Shown: positions 9,412-16,802 of the stretch, in pieces
Numbering within the stretch: the stretch's first letter is position 1
How the letters are laid out: each line of letters opens with the position of its first letter
From: Hyaloraphidium curvatum SAG 235-1
Taxonomy: Eukaryota > Fungi > Monoblepharomycota
DNA length: 64,000 bases
Direction of reading: 5' to 3'
NCBI GenBank assembly: GCA_025558095.1
Contig: JAIVFI010000011.1
Location: 310,001 to 374,000, forward strand
The notes under the pieces: model-generated
Databases searched by the model: none
What the model was told of the DNA's origin: nothing
The model's input: the letters and a program-made list of their open reading frames with translations, nothing else
Translations under genes and position numbers: made by a program

Positions 9412-12400
9412 CTAAGGATCGAATCCGAGCGCTTTCAGCCGAATCTCCACGGCCTCCGCCCCCGCGATGGCTTCGTCCATCGCGTCCCGTGCTCCCTTTT
9501 GAATGTTTGCTCCCGAACGACCCAGTTCGTCCAAGCGCCGCTTCAGCATGCGGTAAACCAGGGGACCAAAGTGTTTCAGAACGAAGTTGTGCTTGGGCTC
9601 GCTCAGCAAGGGAGTCTGCTTTCCGACAACACGGTCGATAACGGCTGGCAGTGACAGCAGGCCCTGCTCCAGCTCGCTGTCCTCCTTGCCCGTCGCGCGC
9701 CGCACCAGCGGGGCTGCGTTAATCGCCAGTTGGTTGAAGGACTTGTACGTCTCGATCTTGTCACCGATGATGCCCATCATTTTCGTTATCGCCTGGAGTA
9801 TCGAACCGGACCCGCCGTCCTCGGTCGCATCCTGTCTGGCACGCCGGAGAAGCACGACGGCCGCCGTGATGTCCTCTTCCGTTTCGACTTCCAGGAGAAG
9901 AGGGTGGTCTCCCCCGTGTTCGAAAAGGTGCTTCACGACGGGGTGGCGCTTCTCCTCAATCCAGACGGCCCCGAACATGCAGCGCGTCATGAGGACGAGC
10001 CAGGACGTGATGGTATCGCGGCACTGCTCCCTCTCGTCTTCAGTCATCTGCGCACCGATCTCAAGGTTGCGGAACGTCCTGATCTCCGCAAGGGGGGCGA
10101 GCGGGCGGTCGAGCACGCATAGCTCCTCAAACTCGAGCCCGCGGCAGTCGTCGATTCCCAAGGTCAGCAAGGGATCAAGCTCTGCGAAGGCGGTGGACCC
10201 TTGCTTGCTAGTGTGCAGCACCACGAAGTCGAGCGTCGCTCTTCTGATGAGGCGCCGCGCCGTCTCTACGCTCTGACACAGGATGACAGGAGGCGAGTCC
10301 CAAAGGGAGGAGCGGATCACGGCATCAACTGCAAAGTCATCGAAATCCTCCTTGAAGTTGGGCTTGAGCCAGCGCTGCAAGACCGCGTCGAGAACCTGAA
10401 GCACCCCGACGGGGCAGCGGAAGTTGATGCTCAAGTTGACGGTCTTGTGTTCCAAGATCGCACCGACAGCCTGGCACGCATCGAAAAGAGCCCTGCGCAC
10501 GCCCGAGCGCCTGGCTGCGGACTCGCGTCCGACGCTCTGCTTGCTGTCCAAACCCACAACGACCGTGTTGGGCTGACCGCTCGACAGCGCAAGGAGCTTG
10601 ATCTGCAGCGGCGTCAAGGACTGGGCCTCGTCGATGAGCATGGGTGCAAACTCCTTGCTGAGCTCTGCCATCTCGGGGCTGTCGAGCGTGCGGCGCATCT
10701 CGTCCCAGACGCCCTTGAGGTACTCCCACAGATCTTCCTCGTCCTTGAGGTTGTTCTTTTGCTTCCACTCCCGGTACCACCTCAGCTTGTAGCGATCGAC
10801 CCACATGTTGGCGATCTGGTCGTCCACCTCCTTGCCTTCCAGCCGGGACCGGGCTTGCTGAGCGAAGTCCGCAAAGACAACACGCCTCCAATCTTTCGGC
10901 CAGAGAGGATTCAACCGATCCAGCACGGTCACTGCTTTGACCTCGGGGTACGACCGAAGGACCTGGTCGCGAAGTCGGGTGGTCGGCAACACCACGACCG
11001 CCCCGGTCTGGGCCTTGGCAATCTCGGAAAGAACTATCGAGAACCGGCGTCAGAGGAAGAAGATGCAAAAGCTTCCGGACACGACATACCAGTCGTCTTG
11101 CCGTTGCCCGCAGAACCCTTGATGTAGAGCGTGGTTTGGTGCTCGCACGCCAACTTAATGGCTTCCAGCTCTTGCCTCGTCAGGACCGCCGAGCTCCGTC
11201 CGGACTGCGGGTCGGTTTCGATGAGCATGTCAAGGTTGCCCAGGTAGCGGCGGGGAAGGAAGAAGCCCGCGCCCATGTCCGGGTTCTTGTCGCAGTCCAT
11301 CTTGAACTTGGTGATGATGTCCCAGAGAACCTCGGCATGTGACTTGAGGCGCACGGTTTCCCGCTCCTGTCGCTCATGTTCCTGCGCTTCTTCGTCGTTC
11401 TCCGAATCCGATGCGACAGGTGCCACTGGAGTCCCTTCCTCCTCGAGGCTGGCCTTGATCATGACAGCGTGCTCAATGATTTTCGAGAAGCCCTGTGAGG
11501 ATAGTTTGTGAGAAAATGCGACCACGCATGCCGCCGTGGCAGTTCACTTTGTGGTTGAGAACGATGGCGGTAATGAGGTACCTGTTCGCCTCCAGCTCGA
11601 TGTAGAAAATGCGCTCCTTGTGGTTCAGGCGGCCTTCGAAAACGTGGTTGTCGACCTTCTTCTGGTCGTACCACCGAGCACGGCCGGAAAAGACCTTCAT
11701 GATTTTCGTCTCGAGCTCCGGGAAGTGCGTCAACTCGCGAGCGGTGTGTGCGGTGACCAGAACACGGATGTCGCCCTTGCCAGCTCCGCGAGGACCTTCC
11801 GACGGTCCTGCAGCGGTCATTCCAGTGATGCTCTTAGAAAGCTTCTGTTCGCCTCCGGACCTCCGCATCTGCCTAGTCAGTTCCTCGATGGTGTCTCCCG
11901 CTTCTTCGAACGACGGGATCTCTTCGGAATCGTTGACGTCGCCCTGAGCAGCCCGACGCGGCGGGAAAAGGGCACGCACGAGATCGGTCTGTTCGGGTTC
12001 CTTAGGCAGCTTGTCCAGAAGCGCCGTTGCCCAGGAGTAGATGGTGCGGTAGCCTTCCTTCTGCTGCCTCTCCTCTTCCGCCAGCCTGAGCCGCTCCTGC
12101 TCTTGCGCGGGGGTCTCCGTTTTCGGCGGGACCCATCCCTTGGGATGGACGTTCGTGCAGCTGGGATCCTTGCAGTTCCTGCCGTTGGGGCATTGCCGCG
12201 ACTTTGGCGCTGCTTTCGCGCGCTCTTGGGCTTCCTTTTCCGCCGCAACCTTGAGCACCTTTTCGCGGTCCTCCAGCTTCTTCTTGAGCTTCACCGCGAC
12301 CTTCTTCCCCGCCTCGTATTTCAGGACCTCGTTAAGATCAGCAATGGCGCCCTGCACCAAATCCAAGTTCACCGCCGCTGGGCCGGAAGGCGGGTCCGTT

Positions 12401-15066
12401 TCGGCGTCCCTCAGCTGCGCACGAATGAGCAACGCTTGAAGCCGTTCCGGAGCTCCCAGCTTGGTCCTCGGGAGAGCCTGCTCGACATCGCTAAGAGCGC
12501 CCGGCTTATCAAAGTGGAGCTTGCACCTGGCTCTGGATACAATGAGTCCGATCCGCTGGGGCTGCATCTCGATGGCTTGAGAATACAGTGCGGCAGCTTC
12601 TGGCCAGAGCTGCTCCTTCTCTTTCTCCTGTGCGTCGAGGAAAAGCTGGTCGAAAGGAGAAAGCTTGGCCGAAGAAGACGGGGGAGGACCGTTTTCGGCG
12701 GGCTTGACCTCGACACGGAGGACGACGTACTCCTTGCTGTCATCGGCAATCATCGTGAAGCCGGATCCACCCTTGAGAACATCCGCGGGGAAGGCCTTGG
12801 CCAACCCCATGGAGTTGCGCCCGTCGAATAGGTTGCCGCCCACGAAATCCGCCCAGGTTTCCACGCTGATGTCCTTGTTCACGACGGCGGTGGTGCCCTT
12901 GTTCAGCAGCGTGATCTTGAACTGGTACGATCGGCGCCAGGAACTAGGTATCTTCGTGATGTCGTTGGACCCGTCGGCCGGGAGGATAGTGAGGTAAGCA
13001 CCGAGGTGCTTGGCTCCGCCAGTCGCCGGGTGCACATCCACGTCGAAAGTGACGGCAGTCTCGGCCTTCCACTTCACCGGCGTCACATTGGAGCTGCCTT
13101 CTAGATTTCGCAGCTTCCTGGCGTCAGCCACAGCGTAGAAAACAAGCTTCTCCGTCGTGTTGATTTCGCTGCCGACGAGAGGGGCCACGGCAAGCTGCCG
13201 CGTGAGTTCTTCCTTGCTAGGCCCGGTCTTGGGCTGCTTCTGCTTATTCAGAAAGCCGGGCTGCATCACCTTCTCCTTGCTGATGACCTGCTCCAACTGC
13301 TGCCTGAGCTGCTTCGTTCTAGTCTCCCGTTCCGCGCGGGCCTGGTTGAACTCCTTCCACGCAGAAGGCTCGTTGTACTTGACGACGTCCAAGCGGATCC
13401 TGGCGAGCAGCGAACCCTTAAACGCTTCGTTGTTCAGTCGGGGATGCACGAGACGGTCCCAGAGAGACCTATCGAGCTGCCCGATCACGGCCTTGGTGTT
13501 CTGCGGATTGATCACGACCGGTTGCTGTTCGTTGCGTTCGTACTCCTTCCCGGCATTGTCAACTGCCGAACACCAAGGCTTCAAGCGCAGCGAGAATTCA
13601 GCCGGAAGCGGGGTGGTGACCACAAGCTCGAGCGGCACCGGCCCGGAAGCAGGGTACTCGTCCGGGAAGCCGACCCGGAAAGCGATGTCCTTCCACCGGA
13701 TCTCTTTGCCGAACATGTCGTTGTCCGCAACTCCGACCTTGGCGTCCGGCCGCGTGGGCACGAGCACCTCGAATTCGACTTGCTTCTCGGCCACTTTGGC
13801 TTCCATCACCGGGCCCCACTTTCTCGCCAGCTCCTTTGCGATCCTCTTCGGGTCGTACGTGCGCCGGACCTTGCTCCCTCGCCAGTGGGCGGCGATGACC
13901 GATGCAGCATCCTCGCGCTTCTTCGACTCCTGCGCTTCGGTCCATTTGGCCAGCTCCTCGGTTCCCATGCCCTTGATTCTCGCCTCGTCATCGATCTCGG
14001 CGATGCGGTCGTAGTCGCCATCGATCGTCTTGGCGTCCTTGTTCAGAGCCTTCGCGAGCTCGTCGAGGCCCATGTCGTTCGTCAAGCGCAGGACGATGCT
14101 CCAAATGCTGCCGCGGATCTTCTGGCCGGCGACCTTGAGGTCGTCCCCCTTGTCGACCAGGTAGCCGCCAAAGCTGTTCACGTCCTCCGTGAGGAGCCGG
14201 ATGGCCGGCACACGCTCGATCTTCAGTTTGGACTGCATCGACTTGATGACTCCCTTGGCCGGCTCGGGATCCTCGCCTAGCAACCGTTCGAGCAGCTCGT
14301 ACGCCTTGGCAAGGTCCAGCGCGGCCCGAGACAGGTCCTGGTTCGCCCATCCCTTGTAGCCCTTCTTCAGCCTTTCCATCAGCAAGCATCTGTCGCGGGT
14401 GGCCCGGAGCAGCGCGTAGATGACGCCGACATCCTTGGCCAGCTTGGCCCGGACGGATTTCGACTCGCCGAGGTGGTGCGCGAGCGCGGAGAGGTTGAGG
14501 AGGATGGCGGTCTGCAGCTTCGAATCCAGCAACGCGGCCGCACCGACCGTGTTCAGCTCGACTTTTTCCGTGTCGGGAAAGATGGGCCGGAAGCCGCTCG
14601 CGGAGCCGCCGGGGGCGTAGAGTCCGTAGATGGCATGCACGCGCTGGTCCAGGCAACCCCAGAAGAGGTCGCTGAGCGTGTCGTGTCCGGCTTTGAACAT
14701 GCGGAAAAGAGCATCGGCCATGATCGCGCGGTCCCCGGGGGTCCGCTTTCCGGCGGGCGTCCTCCGGTCCGTGAATAAGTCCGCGAGCTGGTCGAAGTCC
14801 GCCGGAGCGTCGGACGAGATCCCGCTGGCCAAGGGTTGGACAACCGTGTCGGTGTCATCGAGCGCCTGGGAGAATCGGGACACGGCCGCCTTGTTCTCCT
14901 CGAGCCACCGCGTCCGCTCCTTGGCCGAAGCGCCCGGGTCCCGCGGCGGCGACTTCCGGAGCGCCTCGTAGTGCTTCCGCGCCGTGCCGAGGAAATCATT
15001 GTAAGCAGCAAAGAGCTTGTCGGAGTCCAGATTGGCCCAAGAGGCCGCGCCGGCGGCGTCGGCCAT
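9412..15066 (-). CDS. ~1847-aa multidomain UvrD/SF1 helicase-like protein (IQ, RWD-like, MATH, TPR, CCCH, RelE/ParE-like, SF1 helicase); TRANK1-like module
   Basis: Exons 15066-11548, 11492-11090 and 11033-9412 join in frame via GT-AG introns. Helicase motifs: I GSAGNGKTT, II MLIDEAQSL, III VGLDSKQS, IV LSINFRC, V GIDDCRGLEFE, VI VLMTRC. Confidence 0.85.
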
Positions 15067-15431: not shown

Positions 15432-16802
15432 CTACGCGTCCGACACCTTCACGGGCTTGTACACGACCTTCCTCGTCTGCAATGATGCGCGTCAGCATTT
15501 TGCGATTCCAAGCGCGGCACCGCACGGACCTTGATGTAGCTCCAGCGCAGCCTCTTCCAGTACCACGCCAAACCGAGGAAGAGGGTGTTGATGGCCAGGA
15601 ACTTCCAGCCCATTTTCTTGCGCTCGTCGTGCTCCGGCTCCGAAGCCCAGGACAGGAACTCGATCACGTCCTTGGCCAGCTGGGATTTGGTGTTGGGCGT
15701 ACCGTCCTCGTACTCGACTGCGCCGTCGTACAGGGGCGCCGCCATGGAGATGGCACCGCCGGGGAAGTAGGGGTTGTAGTGGAGGCCCTCGCGGACCGAG
15801 ACGCCCGCCGGGGGGTCGCAGTACCCGGTGAGGAGGGAGAAGAGGTAGTCCTGACGGCGGACGCGTCAAGCTGGGGCTGCCACCGCAGGCGACGGTTCGG
15901 CATACCTTGCCGCTGTGCCTGGCCTTGATGATAAGGCTGAGGTCCGGCGGGTAGGCACCGCCGTTGGCCGCGCGCGACGCCTCCTCGTTCGGGTAGGGCT
16001 TGGGGAAGTAGTCGGTGAGCTTGCCGGGGCGGGTGAACATCTCGCCGGCGTCGTTGGGGCCGTCCGTGAACTCGTATTCGCTGGCGAACGTCTGCGTCGC
16101 CGAAACACAGTCAAGCAACGAACGAAGCTGGCCAGGCGCGGTCGGCCCACCTTCATCTCAGCCTCGGTGTGCGCGACACCAATCAGGTTGCGGAAAGCGA
16201 TGCGCTCCATCGAGTGGCATGCAGCGCAGACCTCCTTGTACACCTGGTATCCGCGGCGGATGCTGCCGGGAGGTCGCGTCAGCGTCCGTTGAGTCAATCC
16301 GCCGTGGTCGGCCGAAGTCCCGTCCCAGCTGGCTTCCGTCCAGCCATCCCGCCCCATCCAGCTCCCCGCAGCAAACTCAATGCAGGCCCATGTCCCGGCG
16401 GCGTCCGCACGCGCCGATCCGATGGCCACGGCGCCTTGCCCAGGCGCCGATCCCAGCTCTCAGGCAGCCTACTCACGCGGCGTGGTCGTAGGTCTTGTAC
16501 CACTTGTCCGACTCCCACGGCATGTGCGCCGGGTGCAGACCGTGATCCGGCGTCGAGAATGCGTGGCCGGCGGGCACCACGATCCTTGTCATGCCGCCCA
16601 CGGCCTCCTTCAGCGAGGCCTGCCACGACGCCAGCCGCTCATCCGTCACGAGGTACTCCGAGGTCAGGTACGCGGCCGACGAGCAGCCGAACAGGGTGAG
16701 GATGGTCGACTTTGCGGACACGGCGCCGCCTGAGGATGCGGTGCCCGCCGCCGTCGAGGCGAAGCGGGTCGCGGTCGCGCGCAGCAGTGGGCGGGCGAAC
16801 AT
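15432..16802 (-). CDS. CYT1: Cytochrome c1, mitochondrial (complex III), multi-exon
   Basis: Presequence, [22 protein letters not shown] heme motif, [36 protein letters not shown] and C-terminal TM helix. Confidence 0.97.

Follow-up and report, generated by a model that had tools for sequence, protein, structure and literature searches.

RNases with a RelE fold typify the toxin-antitoxin and anti-phage systems of bacteria, and in some bacterial proteins a RelE-like domain stands directly in front of a helicase. ArmD, a component of ARMADA II, an anti-phage system of E. coli NCTC 12900 and ATCC 8739 that has been validated by experiment, consists of an N-terminal RelE-like domain and a GajB-like UvrD helicase (bioRxiv 10.1101/2025.09.15.676423). 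In CnuH of the CoCoNuT systems an RNase-toxin-like (RTL) domain precedes the helicase (PMC11090510). A third bacterial precedent for a RelE-like domain before a superfamily 1 (SF1) helicase is the helicase adjoining Tiamat type I-K. For eukaryotes, a 2025 survey of mono- and multidomain RelE/ParE proteins lists few examples, all small toxin-antitoxin fusions for which the author raises database contamination, and the word 'helicase' does not occur in it (PMC11980606). Searches of the full-text literature found no description of a eukaryotic protein that combines a RelE fold with a helicase. Here we describe such a protein, P0001, encoded on the minus strand of a 64,000-nucleotide stretch (the window, to which all positions refer) of contig JAIVFI010000011.1 of the chytrid-like fungus Hyaloraphidium curvatum SAG 235-1.

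Fold and limits of the domain

An initial annotation of the window had proposed that 75 residues directly upstream of a helicase form a RelE/ParE-toxin-like domain. The quoted peptide exists: it is the exact translation of positions 11772-11548 of the minus strand and recurs unchanged in P0001, where it is read from the final codons of exon 1 within a 1214-codon open frame. Over the domain, P0001 is 61-63% identical to a paralogue and to a syntenic orthologue, compared with 56-74% over the helicase, 22-24% over the linker that joins the two and 17-46% (about 30%) over the N-terminal 1100 residues. The domain is as well conserved as the helicase. Because the identity of the domain is so far above that of the N-terminal regions, the 75-residue stretch is not a chance feature of the open reading frame (ORF).

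A model of the domain built by AlphaFold2 (AF2) from a nine-sequence alignment (A2) had a mean predicted local distance difference test score (pLDDT) of 86.8 and a predicted template-modelling score (pTM) of 0.80, and the five models all scored 85-87. Model residue i is residue 1091 + i of P0001. The model comprises a strand (model residues 10-13), two helices (15-23 and 26-35), four strands (44-48, 51-55, 61-68 and 71-78) and a C-terminal helix (84-100). When the model was compared with the PDB by Foldseek, a check that the initial annotation had itself put forward, nearly all matches were RelE, YoeB, HigB, YafQ and ParE toxins at probabilities of 0.9-1.0, which bears out the proposed superfamily. 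VIA alignments to HigB chains reach model residues 100-105. A shape search of the ESM Atlas returned solely clusters of RelE/Gp49/YoeB/ParE type or clusters without a common Pfam family, and language-model features agreed with a RelE-type fold (0.88-0.92). A second predictor was available for the relative P0005, whose domain is 36% identical: its ESMFold model from the ESM Atlas matched RelE and Gp49 clusters with template-modelling (TM) scores of 0.63-0.75. An AF2 model made from the single sequence (pLDDT 60) matched SET domains and RNA recognition motifs at E > 0.6 and was disregarded as meaningless.

We consider it very probable, on the strength of these models, that the domain has a RelE/HigB (BECR) fold, and by structure it falls within the RelE/ParE superfamily. 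That the resemblance is instead convergent, or a modelling artefact in which a small alpha/beta domain unrelated to RelE (longin-like or roadblock-like, for example) has been mistaken for this fold, is highly improbable in our view. Two independent predictors arrive at the same fold family for two divergent members, and the RelE-type matches stand 3-4 Z units over unrelated rows, cover the whole domain and reproduce the HigB topology down to the C-terminal helix. The label RelE/ParE nevertheless needs narrowing: no Pfam or NCBIfam RelE/ParE family recognises the sequence, and the nearest structural neighbours are RNases of the HigB/Gp49 type, not ParE.

Intron 1 does fall right after the terminal HK of the 75 residues, as annotated, both in the genomic sequence and at the joint in a transcript contig. 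The domain does not, however, end at this exon boundary, since its last helix, alpha3, is encoded in exon 2. The position of the intron is common to three H. curvatum paralogues (this gene and the loci L002 and L004), while the intron is absent from the fourth paralogue (L003), from two environmental relatives (L006 and L008) and from the orthologue P0003 (L007). Shared by only some members and missing in others, intron 1 is a lineage-specific feature inside the domain and not a domain border. In HigB-TAC helix alpha3 matters for function; in RelE it is the helix that bears Tyr87.

Conserved residues and predicted activity

Several polar residues of the domain are conserved throughout the family. 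Model residues K45, K46, E53, G54 and R61 (R1152 of P0001) are invariant, R55 (R1146) is R in all members save P0010, which has Q, all members whose sequence extends to the pair H81-K82 (H1172-K1173) have it, and either K or R occupies position 86 (K1177). The catalytic pocket of the M. tuberculosis toxin HigB-TAC contains K58, E66, R68, N73, R77, K95 and K99, of which R68, R77 and K95 have been equated with K54, R61 and R81 of RelE; toxicity is lost when K58, R68, R77, K95 or K99 is replaced by alanine and is partly reduced in E66A (PMC9098466). The spacing of the two sets of residues is similar. The E-x-R pair is separated by two residues and the K..K pair by four in both proteins, R(+6)R is a further parallel, and the distance from the R to the H/K of the last loop is 20-21 residues here versus 18-20 in HigB-TAC, pneumococcal HigB and RelE. 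Their secondary-structure positions also agree with HigB-TAC, at the end of a strand, at the start of the next strand and in the loop preceding alpha3. In RelE the catalytic constellation consists of K52/K54, R61, R81 and Y87, and this numbering was confirmed on actual E. coli RelE-family sequences.

The conserved K, E, R and H-K residues are therefore candidates for the counterparts of the HigB-TAC catalytic residues, a proposal made from spacing and secondary-structure position. Because such counterparts appear to be kept with matching spacing, we favour the reading that the domain is an active endoribonuclease effector coupled to the UvrD-like helicase, a eukaryotic counterpart of ArmD and CnuH, and assign it a probability of about 0.55. 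In such a protein the N-terminal part and a CCCH finger would pick out the RNA or ribonucleoprotein to be attacked, the helicase, using ATP, would load onto this target or remodel it, and the RelE-fold domain would cut it, either in the ribosomal A site, as RelE and HigB do, or as RNA fed by the helicase. Its role could be that of a conflict or surveillance effector, directed at virus or transposon RNA or acting by translation shut-off, like ArmD, CnuH and Cami1. Ribosome dependence of the predicted RNase is less certain than nuclease activity; E. coli RelE cleaves on eukaryotic ribosomes (PMC11980606). A more far-reaching version would make this family the first native eukaryotic mRNA interferase of the RelE/HigB type. 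Coupled to a helicase, it would enter or approach the A site of the 80S ribosome and stop chosen mRNAs, whether viral, derived from transposons or stalled, from being translated. As such it would serve cell-autonomous immunity or surveillance, and its ArmD-like design would have come to a fungus by ancient transfer or by convergence. We regard this version as rather unlikely.

A number of points weigh against an active nuclease. Searches of Pfam, NCBIfam, PHROGs and the PDB (phmmer and hmmsearch) with the domain and nine family members gave nothing significant, and by sequence the domain belongs to none of the curated RelE/ParE families (Pfam ParE_toxin, RelE, Gp49, HigB, YoeB, YafQ etc. and their NCBIfam equivalents). 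Its best PDB sequence match was ribosomal protein L27 at an insignificant E of 0.23, and the only hint of a RelE/ParE family was a YoeB_toxin match in one member at E 0.2. A profile comparison with RelE, of the kind that the initial annotation had proposed as a check, came out negative: when hhalign compared the alignment of the family with one of 16 E. coli RelE sequences, the probability was 0.3%, a weak negative, as both profiles are shallow. The residues were equated by their spacing and their place in the secondary structure and not by superposition. Tethered inside a protein of 1847 residues, the domain may perhaps be unable to reach the ribosomal A site, and the genes around its own, cytochrome c1 and a Ska3-like gene, have housekeeping functions. 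Finally, the RelE fold includes non-nucleases, ParE among them. A ParE-like domain that poisons a topoisomerase or binds some other protein partner, next to a helicase that acts on DNA, is nonetheless a reading to which we give very little credence beside neighbours of the HigB/Gp49 type.

The alternative that deserves most attention is that the RelE fold is real and catalytically dead, serving as an accessory that binds RNA, the ribosome or a protein and thereby positions or regulates the helicase, which would then be the true effector. A domain that lacks sequence membership in any RNase family would suit this role, and its conserved basic residues would serve equally well in RNA binding. 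Inactive RelE-fold homologues exist, namely HigB2 and HigB3 of M. tuberculosis, and these may still bind ribosomes (PMC9098466). Uncertainty of the same kind surrounds two of the helicase-linked precedents: the activity of the RelE-like RTL domain of CnuH was explicitly left undecided by its authors (PMC11090510), and in ArmD only the Walker motifs of the helicase were mutated, so that a requirement for the nuclease was not demonstrated there (bioRxiv 10.1101/2025.09.15.676423). A dead domain accounts less well for an invariant acidic E-x-R and an H-K pair at catalytic positions of the HigB, RelE and YoeB type, or for a spacing kept so exactly at only 33-36% identity between members, which is rare for mere binding surfaces. 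We hold a catalytically dead domain to be possible, at clearly less than even odds, and retain the active endoribonuclease as the preferred reading.

Gene, helicase module and relatives

P0001 is the hypothetical protein DFJ74DRAFT_705017 of H. curvatum (NCBI, 1847 aa), which a word-index protein search found as a 100% identical match. This public protein was taken as the spliced sequence and agrees both with the exon translations and with a 7606-nt transcript-like contig from one public run. From the contig exactly 55 and 56 nt are missing, and the skipped segments have GT..AG ends when read on the minus strand; in P0001 the junctions read LNHK/GFSKII at intron 1 and GKTT/VLSEI at intron 2. 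As precisely the two introns are skipped, the gene is transcribed and spliced as modelled, and it is a monocistronic spliced eukaryotic gene (Table 1). The plus-strand reading of the 75-residue stretch was rejected as an unrelated shadow frame, the coding strand being minus. A 431-codon open frame antisense to the gene (11536-12831, plus strand) is a GC-rich shadow ORF and is unsupported as a gene.

Table 1. Positions in the window of the gene encoding P0001 and of its features.
Feature	Positions	Strand	Details
Whole gene	15066-9412	-	Three exons; 1847-aa P0001; basis: ORFs, sequence, identical public protein, transcript-like contig
Exon 1	15066-11548	-	
Exon 2	11492-11090	-	
Exon 3	11033-9412	-	Stop included
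Intron 1	11547-11493	-	55 nt, GT..AG (GTGAAC...CACAG), phase 0, directly after ...LNHK; between last strand and helix alpha3
Intron 2	11089-11034	-	56 nt, after P-loop codons
Predicted RelE/HigB-fold domain, exon-1 part	11772-11548	-	P0001 residues 1099-1173; strand, two helices, four strands; basis: translation, AF2 model, fold matches, invariant columns
Predicted helix alpha3 of the domain	11492-11439	-	Residues 1174-1191, GFSKIIEHAVMIKASLEE, exon 2; basis: AF2 helix at model residues 84-100, VIA alignments, alignment A2
K1136-K1137	11661-11656	-	Conserved polar residues, exon 1
E1144-G-R1146	11637-11629	-	Conserved polar residues, exon 1
R1152	11613-11611	-	Conserved polar residue, exon 1
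H1172-K1173	11553-11548	-	Conserved polar residues, exon 1
K1177	11483-11481	-	K or R in all members covering the position
Acidic linker, RelE-fold domain to helicase	11438-11265	-	Poorly conserved; net charge -8 here, -2 to -6 in relatives
SF1 UvrD/GajB-like helicase core	11264-9856	-	Residues about 1250-1700; intron 2 within; basis: Pfam, PADLOC, invariant columns of alignment A4
Walker A, GSAGNGKTT	11117-11091	-	Begins at residue 1299, 126 residues downstream of the 75-residue stretch
Putative CCCH zinc finger, Nab2 type	12192-12142	-	CPNGRNCKDPSCTNVH, residues 959-975; upstream of the RelE-fold domain; weak Pfam matches below cut-off

The helicase motifs DEAQ, GLDSKQ, NFRCP, RGLEFE and MTR are invariant across the family. 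P0001 scores 34.1 bits with Pfam UvrD-helicase (cut-off 23) and P0005 scores 29.8 bits with Pfam SLFN-g3_helicase (cut-off 24), while the best PADLOC matches of the helicase are GajB, Nhi and AbiO. The linker is acidic (net charge -2 to -8) and the RelE-fold domain basic (+1 to +4) in each of the five full-length members. One may speculate that the linker masks the domain by charge complementarity, as a self-inhibiting segment that takes the place of an antitoxin. A two-chain complex prediction for the RelE-fold domain and the helicase returned no answer (score 0.00) and bears neither way on the intramolecular restraint of an effector that the initial annotation had proposed. Pfam scans of the whole protein and its relatives, in which the flanking ORFs were not compared with the family library, detected no antitoxin-type domain of the ribbon-helix-helix, helix-turn-helix or Phd/YefM type that adjoins or is fused to the toxin in type II toxin-antitoxin systems. 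Upstream of the RelE-fold domain there are weak signals of IQ, TPR and a Nab2-type CCCH finger. The finger is kept in P0002, P0003 and P0014 and is probably an RNA-binding element; the variable N-terminal region as a whole looks like a binding or sensing part.

Relatives that differ in their N-termini, namely P0006 with a MYND finger, P0005 with only 170 residues in front, and L008, all keep the RelE-fold domain together with the helicase. Since the pair is kept despite this variation, it constitutes a conserved C-terminal module. A second architecture, with another N-terminus before the same module, is found at L003 (G000:C12:554409-557657), L008 and L006, and L008 has the region CDLSLRG...YAERGF... 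in common with P0006. On the environmental/Logan contig SRR23967301, P0003 is encoded by one ORF of 1859 codons. A gene for cytochrome c1 adjoins the gene in the window (15449-16802, minus strand) and also adjoins P0003 (L007:3866-4852). The shared neighbour speaks for P0003 as a true orthologue, carried by a related organism. In the paralogue P0002 (G000 contig 9), the C-terminal 115 residues (1701-1816) are only 7% identical to P0001, where the orthologue P0003 is 41% identical; this Arg/Ser/Trp-rich tail suggests that the NCBI model contains a frameshift or overlooks an intron.

A profile spanning the domain and the first motifs of the helicase was used to search 1.84 billion representative proteins for the family. 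Only thirteen proteins matched, three of them H. curvatum paralogues (this gene included) and the others from a few environmental/Logan contigs; among the matches inspected or traced (all but P0008, P0011 and P0012) no bacterial protein was recognised. The H. curvatum genome holds four copies of the domain, and a metagenome scan added two further members. The ParE_toxin and YoeB_toxin hidden Markov models found no match over the whole H. curvatum genome, and prokaryotic relatives were found neither in 185,579 genomes searched with the helicase alignment nor in plasmids searched by tblastn with P0005 as the query. As judged by these searches, this is a small family, isolated at the sequence level.

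Comparison with known systems

The locus presents a RelE fold in a spliced, transcribed fungal gene with several paralogues, and in the same order with a helicase as in ArmD and CnuH. An active domain would offer a tractable eukaryotic model for the control of a RelE-type nuclease by a helicase in place of an antitoxin, a new branch among the immune designs common to prokaryotes and eukaryotes, and a very divergent RelE-family sequence from which to define the minimal catalytic signature. If it is inactive, the fold would have been reused as an accessory domain of a helicase, which would bear on the status of the RTL domain of CnuH.

The closest solved neighbours of the domain are the Gp49/HigB-type toxins HigB-TAC (M. 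tuberculosis Rv1955, PDB 7NBU) and S. pneumoniae HigB (6AF3/6AF4), which have the same topology, C-terminal helix included. Their identity to the domain is 9-18%, with no similarity at the profile level. The HigB toxins are free-standing bacterial proteins of about 115-125 aa that are paired with an antitoxin (and a chaperone in TAC), whereas the domain described here is embedded in a eukaryotic protein of 1847 aa in which an antitoxin is not recognisable. Cami1 (CARF-RelE, PDB 8PHB) likewise uses the RelE fold as the regulated effector of a larger protein; it is bacterial, however, and its regulator is a CARF domain that senses cyclic oligoadenylate instead of a helicase. The group III Schlafen proteins of animals are eukaryotic and place an N-terminal endoribonuclease before a C-terminal SF1 helicase, for which P0005 exceeds the Pfam cut-off. 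As the Schlafen nuclease domain has a different fold from RelE, this resemblance is one of design and not of nuclease ancestry.

P0001 has its order of domains in common with the helicase-linked bacterial proteins. CnuH, set beside it by description, has a RelE/colicin D-fold domain that is recognised by structure alone and lies immediately before an SF1 helicase. That helicase, however, is UPF1-like (SF1B) and not UvrD-like (SF1A), an SmpB-like OB fold stands in front, and the genes belong to McrBC-type operons. With ArmD, also known to us by its published description, P0001 shares a RelE-like domain (here residues 1099-1191) that is followed directly, on the same chain, by a GajB/UvrD-like helicase. 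ArmD belongs to a four-gene operon with two further helicases and a methyltransferase, whereas here there is a single gene with about 1100 additional N-terminal residues, with neither an ArmA-C operon nor, in the searches described above, detectable bacterial homology. The ESMFold model of P0005 also matched bacterial clusters of UvrD helicases in which a domain of this kind is evidently present. These are UvrD/REP helicase clusters, mostly actinobacterial, of about 723 aa and about 300 aa, and one part of them matches the RelE-fold domain at TM 0.69-0.70. Probably they represent ArmD-like fusions, which would form a natural outgroup for a structure-based phylogeny. The layout of a RelE fold followed by an SF1 helicase has hitherto been described only in bacterial anti-phage proteins, and the H. 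curvatum gene is a eukaryotic variant of this known bacterial design.
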